This document shows positions 13,453-60,296 of a stretch of DNA of 64,000 nucleotides, one piece after another. Position numbers and translations under genes: made by a program. The stretch is taken from positions 227,478,001-227,542,000 of the forward strand of contig CM097885.1 of the NCBI GenBank assembly GCA_044892525.1. Direction: 5' to 3'. Each line of letters starts with the position of its first letter. Positions within the stretch are counted from its first letter, which is position 1. The notes beneath the pieces are model-generated. The model saw only the letters and a list, made by a program, of their open reading frames with translations, ran no database searches and was not told the DNA's origin. Source of the DNA: Schmidtea polychroa. Taxonomy: Eukaryota.

Positions 13453-13627
13453 NNNNNNNNNNNNNNNNNNNNNNNNNNNNNNNNNNNNNNNNNNNNNNNN
13501 NNNNNNNNNNNNNNNNNNNNNNNNNNNNNNNNNNNNNNNNNNNNNNNNNNNNNNNNNNNNNNNNNNNNNNNNNNNNNNNNNNNNNNNNNNNNNNNNNNNN
13601 NNNNNNNNNNNNNNNNNNNNNNNNNNN
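13453..13627. other. Assembly gap (N run); others at 26302-26437 and 26677-26804
   Basis: N characters. Confidence 1.
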
Positions 13628-26600: not shown

Positions 26601-27067
26601 TATTGAACGATGACTTATTTTAAAGCCCAGTGCAAGACCTTTTTAATGAGATATCATTACTAGATTTAAAGTTATTNNNNNNNNNNNNNNNNNNNNNNNN
26701 NNNNNNNNNNNNNNNNNNNNNNNNNNNNNNNNNNNNNNNNNNNNNNNNNNNNNNNNNNNNNNNNNNNNNNNNNNNNNNNNNNNNNNNNNNNNNNNNNNNN
26801 NNNNAAAAACCTAAAATATTTTTACACACATAAGTTATGGGGTAGAGAATTATTGTGTTTGCAATAATTAAGGGCAAAAATATGAAATTTTATCAAAATT
26901 TCTTAAATTTATGAAAAATCTATGTTTTCTGTGTGTGCCTTAAAATAAAATTATCAATAAGGAGCAATAATTTGAATAAAAAGGGAAACATTTACATACA
27001 TTCTATATCACATTCGATATGTATTGCACATGCCTTGTTTAACATGAGTGTATATGCTTAATATGTG

Positions 27068-28792: not shown

Positions 28793-31700
28793 TCTATTAC
28801 TAAAAAAACAAAACAAAAAATAGTTAAACATAAAAATTTATTTGGATAAAATTTGACAAAAATGATAATTACGAAGTGTCTTTAGCAAAGACCATTCGAA
28901 CTATAACCTATAATCTCATAATAAGTTGTAAATATTTTATTAACAACCCCCCCCCCCCTAAAATACGTAATCGTTGAAACAAATGTTCAGATATGTATAT
29001 TTGAAACTTATAAAAGTATAAATTACATTTTTTCATAAGTACCCCTCAAACTATACATTAAGCGAGAACAATATATATACAGTTATCAAATTTAATAATT
29101 CCTCAGATCACCTAACCATTAATTATTGTTTAAATGCATTAATTCAGACTATTTTACATGTATATTGGACTTACCTTAAAATTAACTTTTTAAAATAGCA
29201 ATAAAAATATTTCGTAAAACAGAATATATTCAAAATTTTAAATTTAAATTTAGCGGCATTTGGGTACATAGCAGAATATAACTTTCATTGGTTATAACAA
29301 ATTTTTTTTTAAAAAATTAATTGTAGTTCTAATACAACCATTTCAAAAGTCCTACTAATTAATAAATAGTATTTGCATAGCATATCATGTAGTAATTTCT
29401 TTCCATATTATTATTTTCAAAAAGTGAAACAATTATTAAAGGATCGATAGTTAAACTACTTAGAATTAAATTTAAAATTTAGTTGAATTTTAAAGTACTT
29501 TATTGTTTTGGTATCTGCCCGTAGGGAAATTCCCATAGTTAAGAAATTAAATATGAAAAGTTTATGAAGATACCAACAATAGGAAGCTTTAATCAGTAAC
29601 ACGAATTACTATGCCAATGAATACAACCAGTCGTGAGGCGCATATAAAACAGGCGTAGTTCGCTTATAATAACTTGATGCAATTGTATATGGTTATGGGT
29701 GTATGTGAATAGGGATGGGTGTTTGAGACAGAAGGTGTGATCAACAAAAATGCTGATGGTCTAAAATCGACAAGCAAAACGATGGGTAATAGCGGGCACA
29801 CTCAGTCGCACACCGGTATGGTCAACGACTATATTAGACATAGGGTTCATTAGATCATTAGTTAAAGAAACGGACGATAACAAGAGCCGAACCATCAAGA
29901 AAAGTGGTTAGAAGGATAGAGACCAGGCAAAATCGGACACAAGCCTTCTATCGGCAGTCCGTGAACTCAAAGGAGTGCCCGACAATTATAGTGCGGATAA
30001 CGCGCTCACTTTTTGCGAGCACTCGCCCAGTTGATACACTACCAACATTGATCGCTCAACGGGTATCAATTGGCAGGACCATCGTTGTATTCTGGGTTAC
30101 GCTGGAAACAGCACTAAAGAGCCAAATAATTGATCATCATTAACCCGTCATACAAATTATATATTCACCATTTTGTACAATTATTTTCTGCCTTATTGCA
30201 AGTTAATTAAAAATGCCATCATCCCAGAATATATTTGGTTTCTGGGCGAAAAACTGTTCAAGGTGCATTTAACATTCTCCAAAAGATGTGAAAGTTTTCT
30301 CATTTAAATAATTTTGCGAAAATTGAAATAAATGAAAATCAGAATATGTAAAATGTTGGGCTAATAATCAATCTTCATTTTAATTTTTTTGTTGTTTTAA
30401 TTAAGTAAGTAAATGGTCAACTGAGACCGCCCACATAACACTCAAAAAGCACAGAGAACATTTTAATGATCTGGTCTCGACTAATAGTGATGGTTCCAGT
30501 TTTCTCTCCACGCCCCTTAACATGCTAATCATGTTCCAAATATTTTTGAGTAGTCAGTTAAAGATCCGATATACGTGTTCCCCTGTCATCAAAAATGAAC
30601 CAGGATAATTCCTTTCCTTAAAATTTAGTTGTGGATATGAACAGCAAATCCAATACTCTGAAAGCATGTTTTTTCTGTGCTAATAAGAATGCACAAAACT
30701 CGCTACTGAAAGAAGAGATCCTAATATTAAAAGTGAAAATTGATCGTCTGGAGGAAATTTGGTTCACTCCCTTCCAGATAAAAGAGAGGAATAAAAAAAT
30801 CCATCGCCGGAAGTACTGCTGTGACAGTCTAATCAAGGAAAGCAAAGCCCAGGGTGCCTTTATACAAGAGCAGTCTCAAGCTGTGTATCAAGTATATACA
30901 GCCCGCGAACTCGAAACTCACATTTCAGGACTCAGTGCTGACGAGAAAGCCAATATTGTTCCATCTTACCACCTGATGCCGGAACTAATGCTCCCAACGT
31001 CCCAACCCCGGCCAAAGTAAGCATATGTCTCGTGGCGGCACCATTCATAGATTTGAGTGTGCCTACCCAGGTACCGCAGTTCACAAGCCAAAGAAACGAA
31101 ATTTGTCCAAAGCCGAAAGAAACGCTAAAAAGCGGGCAAGAAAAGCCGCTGCATTGGTCCAGATCTGCAACGCTATCTATCTTCCAGACCTTACCTTGGA
31201 GCTGCTGGACGAAGCAGATATACTGTCGGCAGGAGAAAATGAGTTCGAGTTGGATGCTTCACTGACAGATCAAAATGACTGGTAAAGCCTCTCCAATTTT
31301 CTAAACAACTTAGCTCTATTTGTGTTCATACTTATGTTTATAAATCAAATGTTGCTACATCAATATAATAAATTTTCTTTGTTATTGTTTTTCATCTTAA
31401 TAAATTCCTCTTTCTGTTGGATAAAGTTAAATGAGATGGGAGCGGCTGGAGTGAACTTCATGTTCACCTTGGAGGAAAAGTGAATATTCGGACGTAAGAC
31501 CATCTAGCAGCAGTCGAGGACCAGTCCAAAACTCAGGGGGAGTAGTTGTATGGCAGCAGCTCAGCTGCCCCCTATTGTTCAACGACAGTTGGCAGCACAA
31601 ACATGACGGTTGTCATGGTCACACTGATCAAAACATCATAAGTCATGGGCGTTTATTTACAGAGCCAATCAATGATCCGCCTATCAATTCTATTTTCCGT

Positions 31701-32377: not shown

Positions 32378-34038
32378 TTTTTACATATTTCTGAAAGATC
32401 TTGTTCACTTAATTCAAAATTAACAAGAAATTAGTGATTCTCATGATTCATCATATGATGGAGTATCAAACAATACAATTTTCAACAATCATTAGTTTTT
32501 CTTTTAGAAAAACCTTTTAAAAAAAACCTTAACACGTCTTGTGAATGTGTTGATAAAAATAAAATATGTATTAAACCAACATTTGTCATAAAATATTACT
32601 CTAAAACTATATTAACAATTAATGAAATAAACGTGGTGCGCCCCAAAGGTTTCCGGCCTATCCCAGTTAAAAACTGTGAACACCGACTTTTTTTGATTAG
32701 TATAACATCAGTATTTTTCAAACCAATTGACCAATATTTTGATACTTATTCTTTAAATGCGCCTCACATTTTTAGTTATAAAATATTGTATTTTTGATAT
32801 TTGTGCCCAAAAAAATTATTTTCTTTTTAGTCCACAAGAAAAACATGGTATTTTAAACAGTTTTTTTACATATATTATTTTGTTCTTTTTAGTCTTCTCA
32901 AATCTTACAACCGATCTTCTGTTAAAACCAATCTTTTTCATACATACATTTTTTATGCAGAACATATTTTTCTCCTAGATCGCGACTTATGACTTAATTC
33001 ACAGTAGTGCAATACATAAATGGAATTTGACGACAGATATATTAGCATTTAAAAAATTTTAAAAATGTTTATGTGTTGCGTCATACGTGCGTTTTTCACC
33101 TAAAACAAATCGGTTAAGTATAATTAAGTTCTGAGATTATTAAAATATTGTCTTGTCATCGAAGGCAAGCATGTTTACAAAATTTCAGCGAAATTGGATT
33201 ATGGAAAGTGCTTCAAAATTCGAACGAAAGATTTGACCCGAACATACAAGAAAGCAAGTTAAGAAAAACGTGATAATAATAAAAATAAAAAAGTCCATTT
33301 CTAACTAGGTGCGAAAATCTTTTGTGCGCACCACGTAATAATTTTTTTATGTCAAATTTAAATCAGCTCGTGTGTTATTTAGAAAAACAAACAAAGTTAC
33401 AATTCCAATGTATTCAATAAAGTTCTTTGATTTCGATTAAAACATCGTTATCAAGCCAAATGTCAAGAACTTCAAATTGCATTCATCAATTAAAGAGAAA
33501 ATAAAACAAAATTAACCGAGCATTCCTTAGGGGTCATAGCTACACTTTTAGCTAATAAGTTTTGACAAATATCTGCGCAGTTAATATTGAGTTAATTCAA
33601 TTCTGAAATAATTTTGGCAATACTTCATATAATTTTCAAATTTCAGTTTCAGTTATTAAATTAATTATAAAATTATTAATAAAATTCCAAAAAGTAACAA
33701 AAAAAATTTTCTTGAGCATAATAAAATGTATTAAAATCTTGGTGAATTTTATACAAAACCATTGGTTGAAAATTACAGTTTTTCCCATATGAAAATAAGT
33801 GAATCATTGACAGAAAAATATTTACCCTACCAGAAAGTGATAATGAAAAAACTGAGCGAAAGAAAGGATAATTACTATTGATAATCTAAATCATTTACCA
33901 AAATATTTCAGCACGCAATAATACTGTTGGGCGTATATGGGAGAAGTCAAACGGACATTCGTAGTGCCGCTGGCATCATGTTCCTTTAGCTCGGGCCATT
34001 CCCCCACATAACCCGCATGATTTACAAATATTCCCTCA

Positions 34039-34174
34039 TGTGAGCCCGTGATGATCTACCCACGTTGGTGCTGCTCACACGGGTCGGAGTTGATCCGCAG
34101 GTGAGCCCCTGCCTTAGGACTACTACGGACCCACTCTCAGTTCAGGTTCCCCGGTGCCTAAGAAGGTCTTACCC
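34039..34174 (-). ncRNA. Conserved structured RNA module in U5 (class unknown); second copy 60418-60553
   Basis: Three helices with compensatory changes across copies at 6919-7059, 23686-23827, 31490-31627, 29935-30073, 14906-15043 and 14528-14614. Confidence 0.6.
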
Positions 34175-34457
34175 ATACTCGTCATGCATTCTTGGTACGA
34201 CCCTGGTCCAAGGGGACGACCCACATTCTCCAATGGTCATTCCAATTCATTTATCCAGTCATAACTCATCACTCTATAACTTTTACGGGACAACACAACG
34301 AATACTATGATTATATTAATGAAATTGAGGATACATATAAACACAAATTGCAGAATCACAACACGTAGGAGAGTACAAACATGCATCATCCAAGTCATTT
34401 ATAAAGATTGTTGAGCTTGATCGCGTCGGATGAGAGATGGGTCAACGACATGTCCAA

Positions 34458-35219
34458 TTATGGGAAAACTTCCCCTTCGGCGATCATCTCGTCGATGTCG
34501 ACCGGTAACCGACGGTCTCGCACGAGCTGGACCCCTTCGGGCGAGATCACCCGGAATATCTCCTTTGTGGGGGTAGAGGGTATTGACGATAACTTCTCCA
34601 GAGAAGACTTGGCCACAGATAACGACGCCTCAAGAGCCGCGATTGCATCTCGGCGTCTTTGATTTTTGGCGGCTCGGGTCGGCCGTTTTCTTTTACGCTG
34701 TGGTTGATGGTTGTCCGCATCGGGTGCTGTAACTGATGTCACTAAAACTGGAGCCAAGATAGGGGCGGATGGACCATCCACCGGCGGCTGACAACTATAT
34801 AAGGCCGGTGCTGGAACAGGCGGCAGATAGGAGCCGTGCCCCAGACAACTGGTTGTAGCGGTGGAAGTACTTTGGTGGTGAGTTGGAAAAACATTACTGG
34901 CCTCCAAGACGGGAAATTCTCGTACCCGTTTGGCCAATTCTGCCTCCGTGTAGACCTTGTGGAGGGCTTCCGATTGCGCCTTGATCGTCAGTCTTTGACA
35001 GCGACTCTCCTCTAGGAGGCTGTCCCGGCAATGTTCCAACCGAAGAATTTTACTGCGCTCCTCCTTCATCTGTGGCGGGGAGAACCACGTGCCTTCATAG
35101 AGATCAATTCTCTTTTTCAGTGCCCCGATATATAAGTGGAGTTGTGCTATGACTGCGTTTTTATCTGCGCAGGAGAAGCATGGACGAAGATCCTTGTTCG
35201 TAGCGGTTGAAGCAGGCAT
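34458..35219 (-). CDS. LTR-encoded protein, copy D (253 aa), in the 3' LTR
   Basis: Intact ORF; splice acceptor directly before ATG (tctttag|ATG); homolog family present in solo LTRs. Confidence 0.85.
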   Translation of the reverse strand: MPASTATNKDLRPCFSCADKNAVIAQLHLYIGALKKRIDLYEGTWFSPPQMKEERSKILRLEHCRDSLLEESRCQRLTIKAQSEALHKVYTEAELAKRVREFPVLEASNVFPTHHQSTSTATTSCLGHGSYLPPVPAPALYSCQPPVDGPSAPILAPVLVTSVTAPDADNHQPQRKRKRPTRAAKNQRRRDAIAALEASLSVAKSSLEKLSSIPSTPTKEIFRVISPEGVQLVRDRRLPVDIDEMIAEGEVFP

Positions 35220-37506
35220 CTAAAGATCAAGACGTTTTGTTATTCGTGGAGTGTAAAAAAAAAATTGCATTGGAGGGTCGTTTCCAAATTTTTGACTACG
35301 AGTTTTACCCTATTTTCAATCATACTACTCGACAATGACCCACCTACCCATGGCGCTGGTCAACATTCACACTCATTTGTCTGCAAGCATCCATACTGAT
35401 AGAGAAAAAGAAAACGGAATTCCTCGAAATAATACATTTATCATAACTTTGACTTTATGTTTGTCTTTCTGAAATTGGCCATTTTTATTTAATGTGTTTT
35501 TATTAATTTACCACAGTCGAATTTATTATAAGTATCCTTCCCTAGTAATAGCATTCCCACTCCCCGCACTACTATATTCATGAAATTACGCGCGAGTTGT
35601 GTCGTAAAAACCTAGTTCGGTATGACTGGTGACTATGGGTGTTTTAAACATCGTGATCGGCTTCATAGAAAAAGAACCGCAAAAATTTAATTTCAATCTC
35701 ATTATAATTTGCTGTTTGATCAGCTTAAATCTTGCGCCATAAATGTCGTCATGACGACGCTTGTTTGTGAATAGTGGTGTATTAGTTTCACTCTGGATGT
35801 AGGCTAGCAGATGTCGTCAGGTCTGTTCGTATGTATGCATTGTATGATTTATTGTCAGCCTGTGTTTGTGGACTAGGTAGAAATTCTACTATTCAGTATG
35901 ACGTAATCTCGCTGTCGGGTTGGACATGTAGTCTAATCATCTCTTATTTTACCGGTACGCAATTGTGAGATAAATTTATCTACTATCTGCACACTAGACA
36001 TGACATTGCTGGCTGATTTTCCAGATAGGTTGGAGTCTGAGAGAGTGTCACAGAAATCACATGAATCTAATTGTGTGGGTTAAATTGCGAATCTACTAGA
36101 TAAGATTGATTTTATATTTAGATTTTTCTCTACTAATTGGTTTTGAGATAAAAACTGTCGACTCGTTTGCTCGTGACTGAGGCTTCAGATGTCTTATCAA
36201 TCGATTTCCCGGCAGTCTCCTACACTCACTCGATGTTGTTGGCGACCGTTTCTTTCGGACTCATAGCCAGTGTTTAAATCTACTATCTGGAGATGTTCAC
36301 TCATCTCTAAAACGGCTATTATCGATGACAGCGACTAGTTGTCGGTTGGTGATTAAGTTTCCCCGGAGTCGACGATAAGCAAGACGATGGATCTATTCGC
36401 TAACCTACTGGCGGTGTAGATTCTAAGGCATCTTCAGATTGCAAGATACGAAATGGGCTTAATACAGAGAATTTCTCGTAAAAACTCGAAATTAATAACT
36501 CCTTCCGGTGGACATTCTAACAGTCACTTTTCTCAATGCAAGACGAATATGGCTCAAACTCCAAGATTATTTAATTACGTGATTGGACACAATGCTGATG
36601 ATAGTTTTAATGGTATATCTCCTGGAGTTCCCAAGGTATCGTTGATTCAAACTATGTCACTCAGAAGTTTCTGCAATGGGTGATTTTCGACAACTAAGAT
36701 GGTTGGGTTTCACTCGATGAAAGAAAGCATTTACTTGATTTGTTAAATCTCACATGGTTTCCTCGCTCCTCACACCCCACCCAAGGCAGTACGCATCTCT
36801 GCCCACTGCTCTTGGACCGGTGTAAAGGACGACTCGACCCGTCTCATCGCAACTCCATTCTCAATAAATGTGCAATAATACAATTTAATTATTCAATAAA
36901 TCAATATAGAAATAATGGAATTATGAGGAAATCAATTAAATAAATGTTCACCTGGCGACCACGACATTTGGATTCCGGGCATGATGACTCTGGTTAATAT
37001 AAATCTCTCATTCATTAAGTAATCACTTTAGTTTCTAAATTCATATGGATCTTGGGCTGGTTCTATCACTTCAATTTCCTGAGTTCATATTCGTAAATGT
37101 CCTCTCCGTAGGACGTTCGAAAAATCCAACTACATCATACCCGGACTCCAGAGGACGTCGTCGCCAGCATCATAGAGAGAAAGCAACACCTTCGTTTAAA
37201 ATATGAAATTTATTGGATTATAAACGTCTTGTTAAATTCATAATAAATATTTAAATCATCATACTAAAATCTAAAAACATAATTTACCAAAAATCTCCGA
37301 AGGTGTTAGATCAAAGTAATATAAGTTTTCTTTAGATAGACTCGTTCGGCTTAACTGAATTCGATCTCCGGTAAAAGTATACGTTATCCGATGTATGAAT
37401 ATGGTTCAATAATCTGTGCTCGTGAGTGGTTCCTAGTTTTCCTGTAGAGTTTCGGGTTAGAATGATTATATAAAGGATAAAATTTTACCTGTAGAGTTTC
37501 GGGTTA

Positions 37507-37559
37507 GAATGATACTCTACAGATTTTTGTCGCTCTTTATATATTACTTTTCGTCCAAT
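37507..37559 (-). promoter_or_regulatory. Putative LTR core promoter (ATTGG box, TATATAAA, Inr-like TCATTC); 5' LTR copy at 63886-63938
   Basis: TATA 37536-37543 lies ~33 nt upstream of the Inr-like A at 37510. CTGATTGG followed by a TATA-like run is conserved in solo LTR A (8715-8747) and B (20441-20475). Confidence 0.55.
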
Positions 37560-38277
37560 CAGGACGCGACTTGCATGTAATATTATTATTTATTATGATT
37601 TTTATGTTTTTTAATGTAATCAGGTATATTTTAATGACTTTTTTCCTATTTTTATTATTATTTTATTTATTTTCCTATTTTTTATTATTTTATCTGTTTT
37701 TCTTGTGGTTTTGTTGCTATTTTATTGTAACTTCATTTTTTGTTTTAATTAGCCTTATGGATGGTTTTTTATTTTTATTTTGTTTTTCTTCTTTTACTTT
37801 TGTTCATTTTTCTTAAATTTTCTGCTATTTTATTTTTTTCTTTTACTGTCGTTTATTAGGTGCCTTCCCTCTTGTCTTATTTTTCCTTTAGGGGTTTTGT
37901 TATTTTAATTAGTTTTTCTAATTTCTTTGTTGGATATTTAATTTGTTTCCTCCTATGTTTCTCGTATTTTTTATATGTTTTTATTTTATTTTACTCTATC
38001 CCTTCTTCGGTTCGCTTTTCCAACACCTTCGGAGCTTGGCCCAACAAATCACTCCGGGACCCGTTAAAATTGCGTCCCGCAATTCACATAATATCGTACA
38101 TTCGAATCGTACCTTCTTTCAGTATAACAACTAATCTCACAATCAAAATCCACACAAACATAAAATTAAAATAACTAAATAATACTTTAATTAAACAGAT
38201 AAAAGGACAAAAATAAGCAAGCAGTGGCCACTTTAGGTGACCGGATTTATACACACAAAGTTTATGAATGGTCGATG

Positions 38278-38913
38278 TCACATGATCTCGAGGTTCGGAA
38301 TGTTATTACTGTCTTGGTTGGTTGAATTCTGGGTCGGATGGCTGGTTGAAGTTGTTATCGTGGGGAGCGGGATTGTAACAGGCATTTGGTCAGGGGATAG
38401 ATTTTGTTGCATTTGGTCGGGTGGGCTTGGTTGTTGAAAATGTACTGCTCGTTTATGTTTATTTTTCGGTCGTGGGTTCTTTCTTTCGTGTTTCTCGGAT
38501 AGTGACTGGTTTCTTCTCCATGTTCGATGAATATCATACGCTTTCCAGATGACTAGTGCGCAGATGATAAGGGTTTCACTGATGGTAGCATAGAGTAGGA
38601 CTTGACTTTCTTTTACTTCCTTCTTCACGATGATTTCCTTCAAGGATTGTTGGGTGGTTTGTTCTTGTAAGAGAATTTCGAGCTGTTCGATTTTTTGGGT
38701 TTGTAGGTGGAGTTGCATTTGAAGTTTTTGCCAGACGGCTTTGTTCCAGCATTGTTTCGGGATGTTGTTGGAGAGCTTTCTTTCGCTTTTTAGTTTGGTT
38801 AACGGGTTTTGCTGTTTCTCGGGATTCTCCCAGAGTGTTGGGATTGGCTGCCACATGGGTACTCCGTTTATCGCTATCATCATTATTGTCACCAGGGTTG
38901 CTCCGAACCACAT
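38278..38913 (-). CDS. Accessory ORF, 211 aa, predicted signal peptide + one TM segment
   Basis: Hydrophobic N-terminus MWFGATLVTIMMIAING and TM-like LLYATISETLIICALVIW; preceded by an acceptor-like TATAG. Confidence 0.6.
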   Translation of the reverse strand: MWFGATLVTIMMIAINGVPMWQPIPTLWENPEKQQNPLTKLKSERKLSNNIPKQCWNKAVWQKLQMQLHLQTQKIEQLEILLQEQTTQQSLKEIIVKKEVKESQVLLYATISETLIICALVIWKAYDIHRTWRRNQSLSEKHERKNPRPKNKHKRAVHFQQPSPPDQMQQNLSPDQMPVTIPLPTITTSTSHPTQNSTNQDSNNIPNLEIM

Positions 38914-38968
38914 ACTACTATACGAAAATTTTTATTTACAATTATTTACATTGATCATTCATCTTTAA

Positions 38969-41080: not shown

Positions 41081-42469
41081 CTACTCAGTCCTACTCTTAC
41101 CGTCTCGCCTCACCGCTATTTTTATGTATATGGTGTCGTTTTTCGTCATGTCTTCTACTTTCCGCTGTAGGATGAAGTTCGGTGCTCCGGTTGCTGATCC
41201 TTCTTCTTCCAAGGGCCTTTGGTAACATACGAGGTTTCCCGCTGTATGGAAACTCTGTTCATGTATACTTTGATAGTTCATCATTGCGAGGTCTATTTTT
41301 GCTTTGAATGGCCATTCTATTAACTCGTCGTATAGCCCTTTGCATATCAAGAAGAATACTGAGAAATGCGTTCCATATGCACTTCCATCCCCATTGGGGT
41401 ATGCTTTCATTTTCATTTTATACCCGTTTTTCCATGAGTAGAATGCTGGACTTAGTAATGTTGTATCCTTTCCATTTCTCGCTCTCTGCATCTTCTCTTT
41501 TACTCCCGTTATCTTCCATATGTATGGAGCCGTTGGTATTAATTCGTTGAGGTTTAATTCGCTTACTTTTTGATGTAGTTCTTTCACCATAATGTTGCTA
41601 GTTTCTACTAGATCTGTTTGTATCTTTGTGCTTGTTCTCGCCTCTTCGAATGCTTCCTTTTCTTCCAATAGTTCTTTTACCAACGCTTTTAGCGAGACTA
41701 TTTCTCTTTCTAAGTTTTCGGTTTTCCTTTCGTTTTCTTGTAATACCGTTGACCATATTTCCGCGTGTGTTGATACGTTTTCTGCTAGATGTTGGGGTAA
41801 TTCCCCTCGGTGTAATTGTTTCTGACATCCCCATTTTCCTAACACACACCTTATCTTTTTCCTTTCACATTCTTTCAGATGTTGAGCGAGTTTTATTACT
41901 CCGGGTTTATCGCATTTGTTGGGGCATTCTCCTCTGAATTCGGCGCACACTTTCTCCTCTTGTATGTTGTGATGTTGACTGATTAGTTTTTTCCAGGTGT
42001 CGGTTTCTCCGCAATACTCACATTTCTCCAGTCTTTCTTCGCATCGACTTTGATGTTCTGCTTCTTCATTGACTTTAATCTCTTCTTGGCAACGTTTGCA
42101 TTGACTGATTTTATATTCACATTGCTCCATATGTTGCCTCACTTCCCATATCACTCCTCGCCAATTACATGGGGTGTTTTTGCATCCTAGGTTTGCATTC
42201 ATCATATCTTTTACAGCTGCTTTATCTTCGTTTGTATCTCCCAAACTTGTTATCATTGTTTCTTTGCATACTGGGCACCATTGTGGTCCCTTCTTTATTA
42301 CCTCCTCTACACATTCTCTGCACATTCTGCATCCACATCGGGTTTGGTGAGGTTCTCTTAATAAGTTCTTGCATATTCCACACGTTACATGGTTGTGTAT
42401 TCGAATTGTGGTGGACTTTCTGACTTGTTCAACAATTTCTTTGAATTCTTCTCGTTGTCGCTTATCCAT
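41081..42469 (-). CDS. TRAF: Full-length TRAF-family protein (RING, TRAF zinc fingers, coiled coil, MATH), intronless, element-borne
   Basis: RING CGIC...CGCRMCREC...CPVC; zinc fingers CxxC...HxxxC; MATH YIWKI...LSPAFYS..NGYKM...YPNGDGS.YGTHFSVFF...WPF. Confidence 0.93.
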   Translation of the reverse strand: MDKRQREEFKEIVEQVRKSTTIRIHNHVTCGICKNLLREPHQTRCGCRMCRECVEEVIKKGPQWCPVCKETMITSLGDTNEDKAAVKDMMNANLGCKNTPCNWRGVIWEVRQHMEQCEYKISQCKRCQEEIKVNEEAEHQSRCEERLEKCEYCGETDTWKKLISQHHNIQEEKVCAEFRGECPNKCDKPGVIKLAQHLKECERKKIRCVLGKWGCQKQLHRGELPQHLAENVSTHAEIWSTVLQENERKTENLEREIVSLKALVKELLEEKEAFEEARTSTKIQTDLVETSNIMVKELHQKVSELNLNELIPTAPYIWKITGVKEKMQRARNGKDTTLLSPAFYSWKNGYKMKMKAYPNGDGSAYGTHFSVFFLICKGLYDELIEWPFKAKIDLAMMNYQSIHEQSFHTAGNLVCYQRPLEEEGSATGAPNFILQRKVEDMTKNDTIYIKIAVRRDGKSRTE

Positions 42470-43086: not shown

Positions 43087-46000
43087 CTATATACGTGAGC
43101 TTGGAGGGCGCTGAGCATTCCAGGCCTCCACCCACTGTTCCTGCTTGATATTACTTGGTCGTCTTATACGATGTTGAAAATTTCTTATTCTGGCCATTTC
43201 TAGTTCTCCGCGATGCCGCCTATCTTTGATTATTTTTATTGTCCCCCCGGTTATGATTAAAAAGGCCCCTGTTATTATTATGCCGCTGATCCACATCATC
43301 TGTTTTATGCTTATAATTTCCGCTTTTTCCTTGTTCGTTATTGTTGATATTGCTTCTGTGCTTTTTAGATTACCGTCTTTGCCATTTCCTTTCATCATTC
43401 CTCGTATTCTTGCTATTTCCTCGTTCATACCTTCCTTTGCCATTCTTTGTATTTTCTCCATCTCCTCCTCGGATACATAATTGTCTTGATATTTCTCATC
43501 GGTTTTCTTGCGTTTTCCTTGCTCATCTTTTTCGTCATTGATTTTTCTTTTCCTCCCTCTTTTCCCAGGGTACCGTCGACATTCTCTCGCTGTATCGTTT
43601 CTCCAGATGCATACTGTGTATTCTTTTGGAGGTTGTTGCTGTGTTACATATTGTAGACAGTCTTCACCCGGTCCTAATCTTGAAATGCAGACTTTGTGTT
43701 CTTTTCTTGGCTGGAGTTGCGTTATCACTACCTCACCTCCTTTTCTCAGGTGTACCTCCTTCCCTTTGACTTTAGTTATTCTCTTCCCGTCTCGATTCCG
43801 GTATGCTTCTTGTATTCTTACTTCCGTTATCGGTTCTGTATCTTCATTTATTAATACTAGTCTCCGATATGCTCTCGACATACATCTTCCTAGTATGCAC
43901 CTTTCTTTTAGATCCCATTCTTCTTTTAAATCCCATTGTTGCTCTCGTACTTGCTTCTTCTTTTCTTGCTTTAGTTCCTTCTCCTTGTTGTCTTTGTTTT
44001 CCGTTTCCTTGGCTTCTTTTATCGTTCCCATTCCACCGTGGGCTGTTATCATTTCTATCATTGTTAGTATGAGTATCATTACCATCATATTTGTTTCCAT
44101 TTCCTTGTTGGTAAAAAGTGGGCATACCCTCTGTTTCCCATTATTCGTCTTTTCCTCTTCCTTTGTTCGGCTTCCCGGTTTATTTTCCTCCTTTTTTATA
44201 CCTGAGTCGTTATTCCCTTGATTATTTTCCTCTGATTTCTCTTTCTCTCCATTCTCGTTTCGACCTTGTTCATTATTATCGTCGTCTTTATCGTCTTTAT
44301 CTCCCCCGCTATCGTTTGAAATGTCGTCCTCGACATTTATGTCGTTCAATAATCTGCGATATGCCGTTAACACTCTATTCCTTGCTAATTTTGCCTCGAA
44401 TTCAAACTCTTTTCTGCCTGTTGCTACATGTCTCTTTCTATTCCATTCTTTTACCAGTTCTCTCAATTGTGTACGGCGATGTTTTCCAATCCGCTTTTGT
44501 TCGTTTAGATTTTGCGTGAATTTGAGGTCTTCTCTGTTCAATACGATCATTATGATTTTCGGAGTTCCTCCTTTTGTTAGTGTATTTTTAACCATAGCAT
44601 TTTCTCCGTTTTCGTAGAACTCATTTATATTTATTGCATATTTATTGCTTTGCGGTATTTTCCATGTTAGCAATAACTTCATGGCTTCTAAGTTCATCCG
44701 TATCGTGTTCCATTGGAACTGTGACGTGTTTTTACAGATATTTTCTACCTCAGTTCTTGTAGCATTTTTACAAATGAATCTAATCATTTCCAAGTTTGGT
44801 TGTATGGTTGCCCAATCCATGGTAGAATTTCCTTCGTTTGATATTTCGTCCAGTCTTGATCCCGATCGATGTAGTATATGTAATGTTTTCGGGTGTATAT
44901 TTGTTATGGCTGCATACATTATTGCTGTTTCTCCTTGTTCATTTTTTGCATTAGATTCTTCTCCGAAGTCTCCAAGGATTCTTATGATGGTTATTGCTCT
45001 GTTTTCTTTTGCTGCTAAAATGGCTTGTTGTAATGGTGTTCTTGAGTCTTTTGTTGGTAAGGTGAATGCTAGTGGTATAAATGTTTTTATTTTTTCTATG
45101 TCTAGATTTGTGGTCTGGTCTCTTGCGTAGGTGTGTACTGTTTTTGTTATTTTTGCTAGTATCGCTTCATCGGATAGATCTTGCATTTCTTCAAAGAACA
45201 CCTCTTTGGCTTTGCGTATTATTATCTCCTGGTCTGAGTTTATTATCTTGGGTTTACTTGTTGTTGCTATCTCGGTTATTATTTGATCGACTTGCTCCTC
45301 AGACTCTCTTGTTTTTACTTTCTTTATTTTTATCTTTTTCTTGTTTGAACTGTTAATGCGTTCTTCCGCCGTAAGCACTTGAATAATACTTAGGTAGTTT
45401 TCTCGAATGTTGTTCATAGTTTCCATCATATATAATACACTCACGGTTTCCCAAAATTTTACTTGTACTTTATCGGAAAATTGAGATATAGCTTTTTCGA
45501 AGTTGGTAATTCGTTTTCTGATTAGTTGTTCGTCTTTGTGATTTGAAAATTTTATGCCACGTTGTAGTAGTTGATTTGGAATTTCGAATAGGTGATGTCC
45601 TCTCATCGCTTCCCTCATCAAGGTATTTTCTCCTTTGGTAAATGTTTCGTTTATATCTACCATATAATCGTTTTTGATCGGGTTCCTCCATGCAATTAGT
45701 ATTCCAGTAATTGTTATTAATTTCTCTTTGATTGCAGTTAATAACCCATCATACATGTTTCCTATCTCCCTATTATCCTCATATGATAATAGATCTATTA
45801 AGATTATGAAGGCTTCCGTACTTTTCCCTTCGATTGCATGATGTAGTGCATTTTTCTGGTTGTGGTCTTGTGTGGTTATCTTTGACCCAGTTTCAAGTAA
45901 TGCGATGATAATATCTTTAGCTTTATCCCGATTGGCTGCTATCATTAGTGGAGTGTAACCTTGGTTATTTTCTTGATCTGTTGAAACGTTACAATCGCGA

Positions 46001-49000
46001 AATGCTTCGATCGTTTCCAGTATTTGTTCATTATTCCCGACCTTTAAAAGTTTGTGCAGCGGTGTATCTCCATAATGGTCTGTGATCGTAAATAATATAG
46101 GCCATTGACTTTTTACTACCCTGAGTAATGGGTGTGTTCTTTCTCGGTTTGCATAATTTTCGATCATTGTTAGCAGACCTCCCAATATCTCAAAATCTAA
46201 TCTGTCTTCTGCCCATCCGGGCATTTTAGCTTTCACTTCCTTTATGATTTTCTCGGCTTCTGATGGTTGTATCCCCAACCGGTTACCTGTTGGTTCGTTT
46301 ATCTGCTGTAACATATTTATTCTATATGTTTGTGATCTTGTTGTTAATGTTCGCCCTTCCGGCTGGCTGGTGGCTGTTTTCGGTATTGGCTTACATCGTG
46401 CCACATTTACATATATTGGCCTTGTGAAGGGGTTGTTTACCAATCGTACTCTTACATTGGTTTCTCCGATGAATAGGATCTCATACGGACCTTTACCGTT
46501 TCGTTGTAATTTTTTGGTGGTTCCTGGAACTAATTCTGGTGTTTCGATCATCACCCAATCGCCTGTTTGAAACGTATGCTGTTTGACGTTTTTCTTTCTA
46601 TCATGTAGATCTTTGTAACTTTCTTGATAAAATTTTATATTCAATCCTGCAGTTTCCCAGATTTCCTGCATTCTTTCCTTGAACTTGGTTACATAATCGT
46701 CTATTTCCATATACTGTGATATTGGTGGCTGATACTCCAAATCCATTGGCATATTGCATTCTCTGCCGTACATCAACTTGAACGGACTCATCTTTGTGGA
46801 CGCGTGAATCGACATTCTGTAAGCCATTAAACATAATTTTATATACTCGTCCCAGTCGCGTTGATGACGATCGACATAATTTGATAACATTTGAATCAGT
46901 GTTCCATTGAATCTTTCTGTCATACCATTAGTTTGTGGATGGTACGGTGATGTTCTTAATTTTGCGATCTTGAAGTAGTTAGTGACTTCGCTCATTATTT
47001 CGCTCATGAAATTTGTTCCTTGGTCAGTTAATATCTGTTTTGGTGTTCCATATCGACAGCATATCTCCTCTACTAGTATTTTCGCGATTGTTCTTGCTTT
47101 CTGATCTGCCATTGCGAATGCTTCGGGGAATTTTGTCAAATAATCTGTGATTACCAATATATATATATTTCCTCTATCTGATTCTGGTAGTGGACCGACC
47201 ACGTCCATTGATATCATGGTCATTGGTTCTGCTGGTACTGGCATTGGCTTTAATGGTGCCTTCCATTTGGTTCCCGTGTTTTTTCTGGTTGCGCAAGTTA
47301 TGCAATTTTTCACCCATTCCGTTACATCCTCGGTCAATGTAGGCCAAAAATACTTTTGTTTCATTCGTGCCAACGTCTTTTTAGATGACATATGTCCTCC
47401 GAGTCTTCCGTCATGGTATTGTGTTAGCAGCTCTTTACGTCTATTCTCGGGGATGCACATCAGTCTTTTTTCTCCATCCATTATCAACAACCAGTCTTTC
47501 TCGATAATATATCGATGTCGATGTTTATCCATATGCTCCTTCAATTTTTGATCTTTCTCATATACCTCTGCTTTCCCTGTTTTCACATATTCAATGATTT
47601 GCTTCAACTCTGTATCCTCTTGCTGGTCTTTCCGTAATTGGCAAAAATCTAAATCTTCTGCTACCATCAGACATATTCGTTGCATTTCGTGATCTACTAA
47701 ATCTGGAAAGATAAATCTGGACATGCAATCCGCATTGGCATTCGCTCTTCCCGCTTTGAATTTTATGAACGGTGAATATTCTTGTAACTGCATTCCCCAT
47801 CGCATCAATCTACTTGAAGCTTCTTTGTGTTGGCCAAGCCATACTAGTGGTTGATGATCTGTTGTGATACATATTTCGTGTCCCCACAACAAATATCGAA
47901 AATGTTTAATCGCTTGTATAATTGCTAATGCTTCTCTCTCGGTTACGGAATAGTTTTTCTCATGCTTTTTAAACGTTCTACTGTAGTATCCAATCACTCT
48001 TTCTTTTCCCTCTTCATCCAGTTGTCCTAATATTGCTCCGGCTGCATATCCACTTGCATCTGTTGCTAATAAGAACGGTTTCTTGAAATCAGGATGTACC
48101 AGTATTGGAGCTTCAATTAATTTATCTCGCAATGTCTCAAATGCTTTTTGTTGTTCTGCACCCCAAATAAATGAAATATCCTTTTTCACTAAGTCCTGTA
48201 TTGGTTTCGCAATACCTGCATAGTTTTTAATGAATTTTCGATAATATCCGCATAATCCGAGAAATTCTTGAACTTGGGTGACAGTTTTTGGTGCTGGACA
48301 TGTTTTTATTTTTTCTATGTTTCTTGGATCTGGTTCTTTGCCTTTTGCTGACACTATGTGTCCTAAGAACGTAACCTTTTCTTTTGCCCAATCACATTTG
48401 GATGGTTTGAGTTTCAATTTCCATTGTCGTAATCGAACGAACACGTTTCTGATATCTTCCAAATGTTGTTCGAATGTTGCTGAATATATTAATAAATCAT
48501 CAATATATACCATACACTGCTTGATCCCATGTGTGACAAAATTCATACATCTCTGGAATGATGCTGGGGCATTGGTCAGTCCGAACGGCATTTTCCTGAA
48601 TTGGTATAGATCTCGGCCCAATGTGAATGCTGTTTTCTCTTTGTCTTCCTCTTTGACTTTGATCTGCCAATATCCGCTTTTCAGATCTAAAGATGTAAAA
48701 TATGCGGCCCCCTGTAACATAAGTAACATCTCATTGATGTCTGGTAACGGGTATGTGTCTCTTTTTGTTACTGCATTTAATTTCCGATAATCGATACAGA
48801 ATCTCTGAGTACCATCTTTTTTCTTCACCATGACTACGGGAAATTGCCATGGCGAACAACTTGGTTCGATCACTTGTGCATCTAGCATTTTTTGTACTTC
48901 TGCTTCGGCTATCTCTTTTTGCTTCTCTGCTAGTTTGTATGGACGTAGTGCGATTGGAGTTTCGTCTATTAATGGTATTGCGTGTAATGTAACATCGCAT

Positions 49001-52000
49001 GCTCCCAAATCTAAATCCGAAATTGCGAATATATCTTTATATTCTATCAATAATTGTTGAAGTCTTTCCTTTTCTTTTTCCGTTAGCAAGGTGCTGTCAA
49101 TTATCCATAATTCGTCAGCTTTCGTTGTTTCGTTGGTGATTTTTGGTAATTCGATGTCTATCATGGGTGTCAATCTACCCAATCTTTCATTTTCATATAT
49201 GATTTTATCTTCTTCCTCGAAATTTGTGATGTTGATTGGTATTTCCCCGTCTTCATTTATTGTTATTATTTCTCTTGCTAATGGTAATTCTCGTCGTTTT
49301 TCGAATGATTTGCTTGGCTCAAAAATGACTTCTCCTTCCATTCCTGCATCCACTTTTATTTGGCATATCATCTGTGATTTTGCTGGTACGATTATTTTCT
49401 CCGGACATCTAATTATTGCGTTCATCTTGCATATTCTACCCGCTTTGTCCTTTAGACACATTGTTGTTAAATCGATTACTACTTCCTTGAACAATTCTGG
49501 CATTAAATCCGTTCCGATTATACATGGTTCACTCAGTTTGGGTATCACCGCTAGATACGTTTCAATTTCGTTATCTTGATATCTTAACGTAGTCCACCAT
49601 CTTCCTACTACGTCTACGGTTTCTTTACTGCATGCGATGATATGGATAGTTGTTTGTTCGATGTCTTTCCAACATTTACTGGGTATTTGGTTGATTGCTA
49701 TTGCTGATACATTTGCTCCGGTATCTATCATTGCGCTTGTCTCTTTCCCGTTGATTTGGATCATGACTGTTACTGCCGCGCCTCCTGGTGAACTCATCAC
49801 TGCTATCGTTCTTACGTCATCCGCTTGGTCTACACTTTTCGTTCTTCGGGTCGGCATGTAGTTCATCCCTGGTTGACTTGGTAACTGTGGATACATATTT
49901 TGTGTCATGGTCAAAGCTGTTTGTTGTCCAACGATATCTGGTGGTATATAACTTCCGTTGGCTATCCAGGTATTTGTTTTTTCTTTCTCCCAATATGGCG
50001 CTGTTTCTATTGGCTTTTCATTCGGGTTTCCACTTGGATATGGGTATTTGTCATTCCCGTTGTCGCCATCATCGCTATCGCTGCTGTTTGACCGATTTCT
50101 AAATCTGTCCAAAAATTTTGGTTTGTTCTTTTTCAGTTGCGCTCTCGTTGCCTCATCATACATTGTTTTCCGAAATCGTCTGCCAACTTCTTCGTCGGTC
50201 CCTTTTATTTTTGTCAGTATTTTGATTAATCGTTTTATTCTGTGTATATCTTTAGAATGACCGTGTAACACCATTGTTTTTGCCAAAAATGGTAAAAAAC
50301 CTACTATCAACTTCCAATTTACTTTCTTTTCTCTCTTATAGATATCAAAACACGCCAACATTTGAGTCAATATTACTCTAACAATCTGGATAATTAAGAT
50401 GATTCCCAATATTCCTGCCATCATTTGACCGAACACTAGAAATCTTCCCCACATTGCTTTCATCATGTTTGACGTGGCTTGTTGAAAATGATCGGGTGAC
50501 AATAATAGTTCGTAATTGGGGCCTGACTGGAAATTCGTTCCCCCAGTTATGGTAACCATATTTGATAGAATGGATTCTCGCCTTGCTGGGAATAATACGT
50601 TTAATCGTGCCGTTTCTAAATCCTCTGGTGAGTACATACCAGCCTTTGACACATCAATTGGTTTGAAATCTTGCTCTGTTGCGAGTTCTATTAATCCAAA
50701 CTTTTTAGGTTCTTGTACTTCGGTTTTTACCGGTAACATTATCCATTTCCCATCGGGTTTTTCATATAACGGTCCATATGCATTTGAACAGTTAAAGGTG
50801 TTCGGATAAAATCCAATTGGGTTCATAATTCGAGTGACTGGTTGAACGAATCTGTTCCGCCCTTTGTAGCTAATTTCTAACTCGTTTGCACATTTCCCTG
50901 GTGGAATTGTGGGCTTTCTTGGCAGTCGCGCAAATGTCTTGGTACATGCATATGTATACATTACCTCTCCCACCATTCTACCAAAATGTCCATCCGGTAA
51001 CGGGAGTGATGGCATTGTGTTATCTGGGTGTGTTATTGCGATAGCTAATTTTGTTTTTAGTATCTCTTTATTCAATGAACAGTCATTTTGTATAAGATCG
51101 TAATACACTTTTTGCATTGTCGTTTGTCCTCGATGAAATAAAAAGTCCATTTTGTTATTAGCGTACAGGTACAATTTTACGTCCTCTGTTGCTACCTTTC
51201 CCACTGCTCGGTCTATTACTTGCCTTGACATGTAGATACCTGCGTAGTTCGTCCGATATACTATGCTGTCACATTTGGTGGTCTCTTTTTCTCTAATGAA
51301 TCTCATGCCGATGTCCGGATCATCTGTAATTAATGCCGTTGGTGTTTTTTGGGTTGTGAGTCTCTTTTCTTTGGGGGATGGCGGGACTGGTTTCCCATTT
51401 CGCATCCTTACGTTCCCATTCTCTTCATCGTCATCCTCGTTTTCGTAAATTTCTCCTTTTACTTCATTGAATAGAGCACTTTTTAACAATTGCAGTCGGC
51501 ATTTTTGGGTGTTAGCTTCATATATTATAGTCGAAATTCCCGTTCTACACACGTTTTCCGTAGCTCTGCATGCTGGGTTGGTTTTCATTTGATAGTTGTT
51601 TGCGTCGAATTGTGCTTCGTATTCCTTCAACTCCACTGTGTAGGACTCAATTACTACTACTCCCGAGATCACTTCTCCTCTGATCGTATATGTGCCTCCG
51701 TTACATGATCCATCAGTTGATTTTACTCGTCCGGCTACATAGATACTTTCCGTCTTGATCATTCCGCTTTGTCCGTGTATGGTTACTCCATCCCTGATTC
51801 TCATCGCTCCGGTTCTAAAAAGTTCTTTACAGTCTTCCCGTTGTATAGGTACTATTTCTTTATCTAATCCCGGTAATATAAGGGTTGAATATGAGTATTG
51901 TCCACAGTAGTATGCCAACACTTTCTTCGATACTACGCATTCTCTAGCTTGCGTTCTAATGAAATCTGATTCTTGGTATACGTGATAGGAGACTTTCTTT

Positions 52001-57671: not shown

Positions 57672-58343
57672 TCATTCCTTTTTACCACATTCAAGCACAG
57701 ACACCATTTTTGGGCCTCTGTTATGCTTCTCTTCATTTCCCCTCATACACTTCTCCGCGGAATATAATTACCCATCAACCCATAGTTTTCGTCGATTTTT
57801 AATTATCTATTTGGGGTAGTAACAATTATCTATATAGTCGTATAAATTATCTATAGTTAGCATTTATAATATCGATAGGTCGTTGTCAGTTACTGCTTAT
57901 TACCCCCCACATTTTCCTTACTCCTTTTGCGCGGTTCCGCTTATTCATTTAATCTTTCATCTCTATTTCCTTTTACTCGGTTCTGCTCTGGAACCAAAAC
58001 AAAATTCGTTTAACCGGTTTAAACCAAAAAAAAAATCTGTAGAACTTTTGTCTATTTACCTGGGATCCCCTTTAATTAATTAATTATTTCCTCTTTGATT
58101 CATCATCTATTCATACTTATTCTTTGTTCCTATTATTCCTAATTCATTTTCCTTTTCCGTTTCTCCTTCTTTACTGAAAGAATTTTTCTATCATCTTTTA
58201 CGAGCTCGTTTGATCCTTTCTAAATTCAAATTCCATATTTCAAACTCAATTTGCTTCTAGCTATCTTTAATATTCTATCTCACTAGTAATTTAAATGTTA
58301 TCAACTTGTAGCTTAAATGCTATCTCACTATTACTTTAGGCCT

Positions 58344-58745
58344 TTACGACTGGCTGGCACTTTTCAACAGCTCAATCTTCTTCTCCTGACCGGTTGGACT
58401 ATTCAACAACTCGATCTTACGACTGGCTGGCACTATTCACAGCTCAATCTTCTTCTTCTGACCGGTTGGACTATTCAACAACTCGATCTTACGACTGGCT
58501 GGCACTATTCACAGCTCAATCTTCTTCTTCTGACCGGTTGGACTATTCAACAACTCGATCTTACGACTGGCTGGCACTATTCACAGCTCAATCTTCTTCT
58601 TCTGACCGGTTGGACTATTCAACAACTCGATCTTACGACTGGCTGGCACTATTCACAGCTCAATCTTCATCATCTCCGAACTGGCTGGACTTTTCACAGC
58701 TCAGTTTTAATTTTCCCTGACCGGCTGGACTTTTCAACAGCTCGG
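58344..58745. repeat. 72-bp tandem repeat (~5.5 units), each unit a dimer of related 36-mers, in the 5' leader
   Basis: Units start at 58344, 58417, 58489, 58561 and 58633. Confidence 0.95.
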
Positions 58746-59807: not shown

Positions 59808-60278
59808 ATCTAAAAAAAATGTGTTGTTATTATTTGTTTTGCGGGTATTATTAATAATATTGTCAGGTTGGTATTTAATTTTCGTTTGACTTTTATTGTT
59901 AATGTTTCTAACTTTTGTATTTTATTCCATCCTTGGGATTCCCTCGTCATATTTTTCACTTTAATCATTTACTTTTATTATCATTACTTCCTTTCATCCC
60001 TCTTTTTAATTTAATAAATTAGACTAAACAAAATAAGTGATTCCCGTTTTCTTTTCTCACCGCACTCTTTCACATTCATTCAACCTTATTTTCATTCAAA
60101 CTCGTTTAGGTTCGTTTTTATTCATACATACTCTCTTTCAAACTCAGACAGTTCGTATCATTTCATTGCACTATAATTCGTTTCAGCCCCGATTCCATTT
60201 TTATCATAATTAATTAAATTGTTAATCTAACACATCATAACACAAAAATAGACAATCAAACAAATCAATATATGATAA

Positions 60279-60296
60279 ATCCCGGCTGAGCCCCCA
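60279..60296 (-). promoter_or_regulatory. Primer-binding site, tRNA-Pro type
   Basis: TGGGGGCTCAGCCGGGAT, 16/18 identical to the classical tRNA-Pro PBS TGGGGGCTCGTCCGGGAT; 7 nt from the 5' LTR end. Confidence 0.85.

Follow-up and report, generated by a model that had tools for sequence, protein, structure and literature searches.

This study revealed that a giant long terminal repeat (LTR) retroelement of Schmidtea polychroa carries a complete TRAF gene. The element lies in a 64,000-nucleotide stretch of genomic DNA (GenBank assembly GCA_044892525.1, contig CM097885.1, positions 227,478,001 to 227,542,000 of the forward strand), referred to below as the window. The gene is an intact open reading frame (ORF) which is enclosed, together with a single enormous polyprotein and several smaller ORFs, by one pair of identical LTRs (Table 1). 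We consider, with a probability of about 0.8, that this TRAF belongs, as an accessory gene, to a young and seemingly intact copy of a Burro-type element (an endogenous-retrovirus-like element of dugesiid planarians), that the gene was acquired long ago, and that its product would act as an active adaptor or E3 ubiquitin ligase in host TRAF-dependent signalling.

The ORF encodes a complete TRAF of the TRAF1/2/3/5 type, in which a RING finger, TRAF-type zinc fingers, a coiled coil and a MATH/TRAF-C domain follow one another. The RING finger was recognized by the Pfam model zf-C3HC4 at amino acids (aa) 30-68 (23 bits, cut-off 21), and the MATH/TRAF-C domain by PF21355 and PF22486 at aa 316-453 (E 2.8e-25 and 3.5e-25, 89 bits, cut-offs 27-32). 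The Pfam zf-TRAF model reported nothing on the ORF at E<=0.01. In phmmer searches of the PDB, the C-terminal half matched the TRAF domains of TRAF3, TRAF2, TRAF1 and TRAF5 (E 6e-29 to 3e-24), with TRAF4 and TRAF6 scoring lower, and the N-terminal 230 aa matched RING and zinc-finger chains of TRAF6, TRAF5 and TRAF2 (E 5e-15 to 6e-11). Residues 22-157 align to the TRAF6 and TRAF5 chains, and the conserved Cys/His columns extend to H235. In the alignments, all Cys/His ligands of the zinc fingers that follow the RING are conserved, as are the near-invariant residues of the TRAF-C core (S340, F343, G349, Y350, D381, W386, P387 and F388).

An AlphaFold2 model of the monomer, built on an alignment of 123 homologues (alignment A2), reached a mean predicted local distance difference test (pLDDT) score of 91.8. 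It exhibits an N-terminal helix, the RING, four to five small zinc-finger units, a long helix (aa 232-310) and a beta-sandwich (aa 316-455); the N-terminal helix is specific to the clade described below, as judged from the alignment and the model. The TRAF domains of TRAF3, TRAF2, TRAF1 and TRAF5 ranked first in Foldseek, with target-normalised template modelling (TM) scores of 0.73-0.85. As no break was found in the reading frame or in the model, the gene is indeed intronless and complete, and the RING-zinc finger-coiled coil-MATH architecture proposed earlier in a reading of the DNA letters alone (the sequence-only reading) was recovered by Pfam, PDB, AlphaFold2 and Foldseek over 462 uninterrupted codons. 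With its zinc ligands and TRAF-C core kept and a confident model, the product is likely to be a functional protein. A profile search of all six frames gave no second TRAF-like sequence in the window, nor one concealed in the polyprotein.

With regard to the RING, all eight zinc ligands are present and all are cysteines (C30, C33, C45, C47, C50, C53, C65 and C68), giving a C4C4 arrangement. The motif C-G-C-R-x-C of the query aligns over C-G-H-R-x-C of the TRAF6 and TRAF5 chains, so that a cysteine occupies the position usually held by a histidine. The sequence-only reading had drawn attention to this substitution, which is real; it is not special, however, as 22 of the 123 homologues in alignment A2 carry cysteine in this column and 65 carry histidine. 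The cysteine-bearing homologues include TRAF-2, -4 and -5 of Dendrocoelum lacteum and TRAF3-like proteins from one sea star and two crinoids. At the eighth ligand, TRAF6 chains have aspartate, and cysteine is present in the query and in 69 of the 123 homologues. The substitution is thus not peculiar to the element copy. By this alignment it is a lineage variant, common to ordinary planarian and echinoderm TRAFs, in which the zinc ligand is retained. The idea that it marks a disabled or special RING was rejected, since ordinary TRAFs share the variant and the ligands are complete.

The position of the gene agrees with the earlier claim that it is borne by a retroelement. It lies inside one LTR pair, on the strand of the element, between the pol stop codon and the 3' LTR, with its ATG 617 nucleotides (nt) past that stop and in a different frame. 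The polyprotein, a 119-aa ORF, TRAF and three further ORFs form a collinear array on the minus strand, separated by short gaps, and the composition is even across the internal region and unlike that of the flank. The two LTR copies are 100% identical across the 3,697 bp visible, so the insertion of the present copy is very recent. A BLAST value of 99.87% for LTR identity was discarded, as its five mismatches all fall in 15 nt that lie beyond the true end of the LTR, and no mismatch remains within the LTRs proper. Assembly collapse and gene conversion are other possible sources of LTR identity. Every element ORF in the window is open, and the copy is very young and apparently intact.

The composition of the TRAF gene was found to be that of the element, in line with the sequence-only reading. 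Its coding strand contains 42.0% A and 65.4% purine, compared with 41.9% and 63.6% in the polyprotein. Third positions are A in 49% of TRAF codons and in 47% of polyprotein codons, and relative synonymous codon usage (RSCU) correlates between the two at r = 0.79. The DNA flanking the element contains 52% purine and 32% GC; published Schmidtea genomes are >70% A/T (PMC11410931).

An exhaustive search of 1.84 billion cluster representatives (about 15 billion proteins) returned 6,302 matches to the TRAF, with no protein in that library above 37-42% identity. The closest were P0018 (37% over the full length) and P0025, P0030 and P0108 (40-42% over the N-terminal part). Protein searches based on a word index, run with the single sequence or with alignment A1, gave distant matches only (24-29% identity); they missed relatives recovered by the exhaustive search and are uninformative. 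A phylogeny against host TRAFs had been proposed as a check in the sequence-only reading. In a neighbour-joining tree of 123 TRAFs, bootstrap support was 93% for a group of the query with P0025 and P0030, and 99% once P0018 was joined to them; the branch is long and draws the midpoint root. The tree leaves out P0108, which has only 265 aa; BLASTP gave it 36% identity to the query and 47-50% identity to P0025 and P0030. Identities among these five proteins range from 33 to 70%.

The four relatives are entries of UniParc only, and exact-sequence look-ups of the TRAF, P0018, P0025 and P0030 matched no contigs. They are exactly the top four of 166 matches in richness of Glu, Lys, Arg and Gln combined with poverty of Phe, Tyr, Leu, Ile, Ser and Val, deviating by 2.4 to 4.8 standard deviations from the mean of the 166, and the query and the polyprotein exhibit the same bias. 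Given that a purine-rich coding strand yields such an amino-acid bias, these four proteins are probably element-borne too. Outside the clade, the query is about equidistant (29-34% identity) from planarian TRAF-2/-4/-5, schistosome TRAF3 and vertebrate TRAF2/TRAF1. Among named TRAFs, those of the planarians Dendrocoelum and Dugesia come nearest. These distances place the donor lineage as TRAF1/2/3/5-like and no finer.

Elements of a similar kind have been described in Schmidtea mediterranea. Burro elements are giant gypsy-like elements, of which Burro-1 equals Jurka's GYPSM1 (2007), with Grohme et al. 2018 as the source of Burro-1 to -4 (PMC6431247). They exceed 30 kb and contain one enormous ORF which starts with gag and CCHC knuckles and continues with protease (PR), reverse transcriptase (RT), RNase H (RH), integrase (IN) and ankyrin repeats; tandem repeats are listed too, and appear in the published Burro maps (PMC6431247). 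Their env, similar to mononegavirus fusion glycoproteins, is in frame between gag and PR, and was called the first such case (PMC6431247). The motifs named in them are AIR1/RING, Smc, MATH_TRAF_C, BIR, SUMO-like and BCL2-like, with the BCL2-like and ubiquitin/SUMO-like ones located upstream of env; BIR and dUTPase are reported in Burro-1, as motifs of one subfamily that are not stated to define the family (PMC6431247). TRAF modules of planarian elements have been in the literature since 2007 and were reviewed in 2019, when it was suggested that Burro elements 'meddle' with apoptosis and ubiquitination (PMC6431247).

The window element shares with Burro-1 a length of >30 kb, multi-kb LTRs, one huge ORF with the same gag-CCHC-env-PR-RT-RH-IN-ankyrin order, tandem repeats, RING, coiled-coil and MATH_TRAF_C motifs, and an AT-rich host genome. 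Its BCL2-like and ubiquitin-like signals remain below threshold in Pfam (E 0.027 and E 0.12, respectively). We have filed it as Burro-type because its plan matches the published one (PMC6431247), the nearest named TRAFs are planarian and the flank is AT-rich. The TRAF module is placed differently, however. In Burro-1, MATH_TRAF_C is part of a 4,873-aa ORF1, whereas in the window element ORF1 (4,624 aa) is free of TRAF and the gene is a separate ORF. In a Burro-like element of Girardia (Dugesia) tigrina, TRAF is likewise an accessory ORF apart from the polyprotein, but it lies upstream of a 5,140-aa ORF1 with a midasin-like region (PMC6431247), and not downstream of pol. The sequence-only reading had missed that the element is of the Burro/GYPSM1 type, for which TRAF modules are already described; the present case is a new arrangement of a known thing. 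The modest novelty lies in the free-standing ORF after pol, which adds a third position to those known for the module, and in a full-length protein model, a compositionally marked TRAF clade and the identification of the RING variant as a lineage trait.

Two metagenomic relatives, P0167/L001 (JGI 3300027940) and P0168/L002 (ENA ERZ2271731), have polyproteins of 3,700 and 3,865 aa, respectively. They share the plan of CCHC knuckles, in-frame Monjiviricetes fusion glycoprotein, PR, RT, RH and IN, and are 43-44% identical to the window element over PR-IN and 32-38% over env. Their ORFs downstream of pol are unrelated to those of the window element, and accessory cargo varies between related elements. 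At L001:12169-13473 and L002:11946-12911, the ORF downstream of pol gave weak matches to RNase_T-type exonucleases (E ~1e-3, below cut-off). Two scans of metagenome contigs and a search of viral contigs gave no TRAF-bearing relative, and the PR-IN alignment likewise found nothing among the viral contigs.

Host-adaptor homologues are also encoded by viruses, namely the megalocytivirus ORF111L-type vTRAF and the TRAF-like proteins of giant viruses. Foldseek matches in BFVD included TRAF-like folds from both iridoviruses and giant viruses (E 4e-21 to 4e-15). In contrast to the present gene, these TRAFs belong to DNA viruses; they are 19-23% identical to the element TRAF and score below cellular TRAFs. 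A common acquisition with the iridovirus TRAFs was rejected on these grounds. The viral TRAFs appear, from these scores, to be independent acquisitions, which makes the likeness an analogy of strategy rather than common descent. The cellular TRAF2/TRAF3-type proteins, including Dendrocoelum TRAF-2/-4/-5, Dugesia TRAF-2-like A and Smed-TRAF-2A/B, have the same domain order as the element TRAF. The all-Cys RING is common to the element TRAF and planarian TRAFs, and its TRAF-C is closest to TRAF3/2/1/5. It differs from the cellular proteins in its low identity to them (29-34%), its long branch shared with three biased relatives, its clade-specific N-terminal helix and its being encoded by a retroelement. 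Planarian TRAF-like proteins regulate cell survival (PMC7586133), and the megalocytivirus TRAF binds TRADD and drives caspase-8 (PMC3352826).

As the TRAF ATG lies beyond the pol stop and in another frame, we infer a subgenomic message, and the protein would be made from a spliced or trans-spliced transcript. A 24-nt motif containing AATAAA has exactly two matches in the window, with 0 expected by chance, and both lie in spacers just before accessory ORFs. The motif may mark gene junctions, or serve as a poly(A) or promoter signal. Furthermore, an AG is found 1-4 bases ahead of the ATG in four accessory ORFs, namely the leader RING ORF upstream of gag, the 119-aa ORF, TRAF and ORF211; in the leader RING ORF, a T-run also precedes the ATG, giving a splice-acceptor-like sequence. 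Together, the AGs and the 24-nt motif would be consistent with acceptors for splicing or trans-splicing and with poly(A) signals inside the element. Once made, the protein would be an active adaptor or E3 that feeds into the TRAF-dependent pathways of the host for survival, NF-kB/JNK and apoptosis. There it could work beside the element's IAP-type RING ORF, possible BCL2-like segment and ankyrin repeats. Cellular TRAF2 and TRAF3 have IAP partners, which is part of the analogy. The net effect would be that the expressing cell is kept alive or its innate response blunted, as with large DNA viruses that have their own TRAF, IAP and BCL2 homologues. By this analogy, a role in the survival, NF-kB/JNK and apoptosis circuitry of the host that depends on TRAFs appears most likely.

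Several points weigh against this explanation. The mechanism of the TRAF protein is inferred by analogy. Where TRAF3 has Ser-Ser-Ser in the alignment, in a stretch which we take to belong to the receptor-peptide groove, the element TRAF has Leu-Val-Cys, resembling the x-x-Cys of host-type planarian TRAFs; the partner specificity of mammalian TRAF2/3 is therefore not transferable. The TRAF ORF was seen in a single element copy, and it is by composition alone that the four clade-mates are assigned to elements. BIR and dUTPase, the two Burro-1 features mentioned above, were not detected by Pfam in the polyprotein or its pieces, and the window element was set beside the Burro references by described architecture only. 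Finally, no TRAF was found anywhere on contigs L001 and L002, from which it follows that TRAF is accessory and not core for such elements.

The most serious rival, which we consider unlikely but deserving of attention, is that the TRAF serves the particle or genome biology of the element. As a MATH substrate receptor and RING E3, it would ubiquitinate Gag or Env for trafficking or budding, or mark a host restriction factor for degradation. MATH domains are substrate-recognition modules in other ubiquitin ligases, and the RING and zinc fingers are intact here, as such a role would have it. The departure of the putative groove from TRAF2/3 at the Ser-Ser-Ser stretch points the same way, as does the report of the Burro-1 module within the structural polyprotein itself (PMC6431247). 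Nevertheless, the TRAF-C domain is nearest to the receptor-binding TRAF1/2/3/5 and not to MATH domains of the SPOP or USP7 type, and the IAP-type RING and possible BCL2-like segment that accompany it suggest a role in controlling cell death.

A dominant-negative decoy, which trimerises or competes with host TRAFs and does not signal, is a less probable explanation. According to the model, the intact coiled coil and TRAF-C could mix or compete with host TRAFs, and the groove residues are diverged. However, TRAFs that interfere naturally have no RING, according to a statement on TRAF1 (PMC7586133), and here all ligands of the RING and zinc fingers are kept; the Cys-for-His change gives no support to a decoy either, being common to ordinary TRAFs. 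The sequence-only reading had proposed a modulator or decoy of TNFR/Toll signalling, and its decoy half is weakened by these ligands, which favour an active adaptor or E3.

We regard it as very unlikely that the gene is a decaying passenger whose ORF, devoid of current function, is intact merely because the copy is young. The reading of constraint does rest on one copy, and the alignment showed that two clade-mates, P0025 and P0030, have no recognizable MATH domain. Yet, had the 462 codons been free of constraint during compositional re-equilibration and divergence to <40% identity, the full set of zinc ligands and the core of TRAF-C would not have survived, nor would the ORF be modelled at a pLDDT of 92.

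A recent one-off retrocopy or transduction, in which a host TRAF mRNA was taken up by the present copy shortly before its insertion as a passenger with no history in the lineage, is highly improbable. The identical LTRs with the very recent insertion they imply, the intronless ORF and the two metagenomic relatives without TRAF would all be expected of it. Against these stand third positions and codon usage that are already element-like and the ceiling of 37-42% identity in the searched libraries. Moreover, the nearest relatives share the purine-driven amino-acid bias and are themselves only 33-70% identical, and TRAF modules are reported in Burro families of two planarian genera (PMC6431247). 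The contrary case raised in the sequence-only reading, a very recent retrocopy found in this locus only, is thus not what is seen, as the gene belongs to a diverged clade and its codons are equilibrated. The capture by the element lineage looks old, and the gene appears to have shifted since then to the purine-rich composition of the element, because its codon usage is equilibrated, it is at most 42% identical to any protein in the searched library, it belongs to a distinct clade and TRAF modules occur in Burro elements of two genera. The description of the gene as long adapted is borne out in the same way, its best full-length match being 37%.

That a chromosomal host TRAF gene was merely caught between two unrelated LTRs is the least credible alternative, its sole point being that the inner edge of the 3' LTR is not visible in the window, against one collinear minus-strand array with short gaps and a repeated junction motif, the enclosure of the whole array by one identical LTR pair with a primer binding site, and an internal composition that is uniform and differs from the flank.

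Burro-type elements may hold their own anciently captured TRAF lineage, which diversified alongside the element families while the module moved among in-frame ORF1, upstream ORF and downstream ORF positions. Such a lineage may comprise the query with P0018, P0025 and P0030 (the 99% clade) and the BLASTP relative P0108, and it could supply a substantial share of the planarian 'TRAF/MATH expansion'. We put this forward tentatively, at somewhat less than even odds. It is plausible that element-borne copies inflate host TRAF counts, as had been suggested from the sequence. Published figures put Burro elements at thousands of copies (PMC6431247), Schmidtea was reported to have 121 MATH domains or 99 transcripts (PMC6109357), and 150-212 mostly partial planarian TRAF contigs were obtained per human TRAF query (PMC7586133). 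In the literature searched, no paper was found that ties the planarian TRAF/MATH expansion to Burro cargo. If the element lineage is real, part of the supposed complexity of host immunity and regeneration would be retroelement cargo. For annotation, planarian TRAF/MATH counts and TRAF-like transcripts should be sorted into those of cellular genes and those carried by elements, before any immune or regenerative innovation is read from them. The case also presents a retrovirus-like element equipped with host-derived cell-death and ubiquitin parts (TRAF, an IAP-type RING and possibly a BCL2-like segment), a habit better known in large DNA viruses. The variable position of TRAF among related elements illustrates how accessory genes can shuttle between a polyprotein domain and a free-standing ORF.

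Table 1. Features of the window, with positions counted from its first letter; the order follows the element from its 5' to its 3' end.
Feature	Position	Strand	Remarks
Burro-like giant Ty3/gypsy LTR retroelement	33925-64000	minus	at least 30,076 bp visible; 5' LTR exceeds window end
5' LTR	60304-64000	minus	cut by window end; ends ...CA at 60304
Primer binding site-like sequence	60278-60296	minus	19 nt, starts TGG, 7 nt past 5' LTR
Leader ORF, 159 aa	59328-59807	minus	coiled-coil N-terminal part and IAP-type C-terminal RING
Tandem repeat array	58295-58743	not assigned	72-bp unit, about 4.6 copies, 98% matches; between IAP-type RING ORF and gag
Polyprotein, single intact ORF, 4,624 aa	43087-56961	minus	
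Possible BCL2-like polyprotein segment	52291-52491	minus	weak: Pfam Bcl-2, 15.5 bits, below cut-off
env-like region, in frame between gag and PR	50335-52158	minus	Monjiviricetes fusion glycoprotein, aa ~1602-2209; PF24664, E 4e-72
Best-scoring ankyrin repeat block	45793-46017	minus	downstream of integrase; Ank_2 E 4e-18
Helical ORF between pol and TRAF, 119 aa	42559-42918	minus	
24-nt intergenic motif with AATAAA	42517-42540	minus	48 nt upstream of TRAF ATG; second copy 38928-38951, upstream of ORF211
TRAF accessory gene	41081-42469	minus	intact ATG-to-TAG ORF, 462 aa
RING finger	42266-42382	minus	aa 30-68; Pfam zf-C3HC4, TRAF6/TRAF5 RING alignment, column counts
TRAF-type zinc fingers	41780-42193	minus	aa ~93-230; Cys/His columns, TRAF6/TRAF5 RING-zinc finger chains, AlphaFold2 model
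Coiled coil / TRAF-N	41540-41776	minus	aa 232-310; AlphaFold2 long helix and alignment to TRAF3 coiled coil
MATH / TRAF-C	41105-41524	minus	aa 316-455; Pfam PF21355 and PF22486, PDB TRAF3/2 (E 1e-29)
Accessory ORF, 358 aa	39828-40904	minus	coiled-coil-like
Accessory ORF, 247 aa	38969-39712	minus	Glu/Lys-rich, coiled-coil-like
Accessory ORF, 211 aa (ORF211)	38278-38913	minus	hydrophobic N-terminus, one membrane-span-like segment
Candidate polypurine tract	near 37993-38020	not assigned	purine-rich tract
3' LTR, matchable part	33925-37621	minus	inner boundary beyond 37621
LTR ORF, 253 aa, GC-rich	34458-35219	minus	same ORF in 5' LTR at 60837-61598

Since the window ends within the 5' LTR, the inner edge of the 3' LTR is not fixed. 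The window contains no tRNA gene to match against the primer binding site. The RING of the leader ORF was identified by Pfam zf-C3HC4_3 (E 2e-8), and its best PDB matches are the RINGs of cIAP1, cIAP2 and XIAP (E 5e-9); no BIR domain was found in this ORF. In the polyprotein, Retrotrans_gag (aa 52-145) is followed by CCHC knuckles (~245-303), the fusion glycoprotein, PR (2399-2490), RT (2712-2870), RNase H (2933-3062), IN (3170-3360), ankyrin repeats and a long C-terminal tail. A single-sequence AlphaFold model of the possible BCL2-like segment reached a pLDDT of 44 and is too poor to use. The polyprotein continues for ~1,260 residues past the integrase (aa ~3360-4624; 43087-46880, minus strand), a region with at least two ankyrin blocks and long acidic and basic low-complexity stretches, in which no family match other than ankyrin repeats was found. 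A hydrophobic, membrane-span-like segment lies near the C-terminus. Neither Pfam nor PDB gave relatives for the LTR ORF or for the three accessory ORFs after TRAF (358, 247 and 211 aa).

The flank of the element contains runs of N at 13453-13627, 26302-26437 and 26677-26804. A plus-strand purine excess, with an AT skew of 0.14-0.30, was observed at 2001-4000, 12001-14000 and 20001-22000; these stretches gave no protein similarity to the element polyprotein. The LTR ORF contains 53% GC and has no purine bias. Its paralogues, intact or partial and 36-42% identical, are found in GC-rich islands of the flank at 7435-8121 (minus), 22632-23420 (plus) and 30658-30972 (plus), and the N-terminal ~115 aa are strongly conserved among the LTR ORF and these paralogues. 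An exact match of 28 nt (6978-7005 and 34097-34124) is located at a similar distance downstream of two of these ORFs. The flank paralogue sites may be solo LTRs of related families with a conserved LTR-encoded protein.

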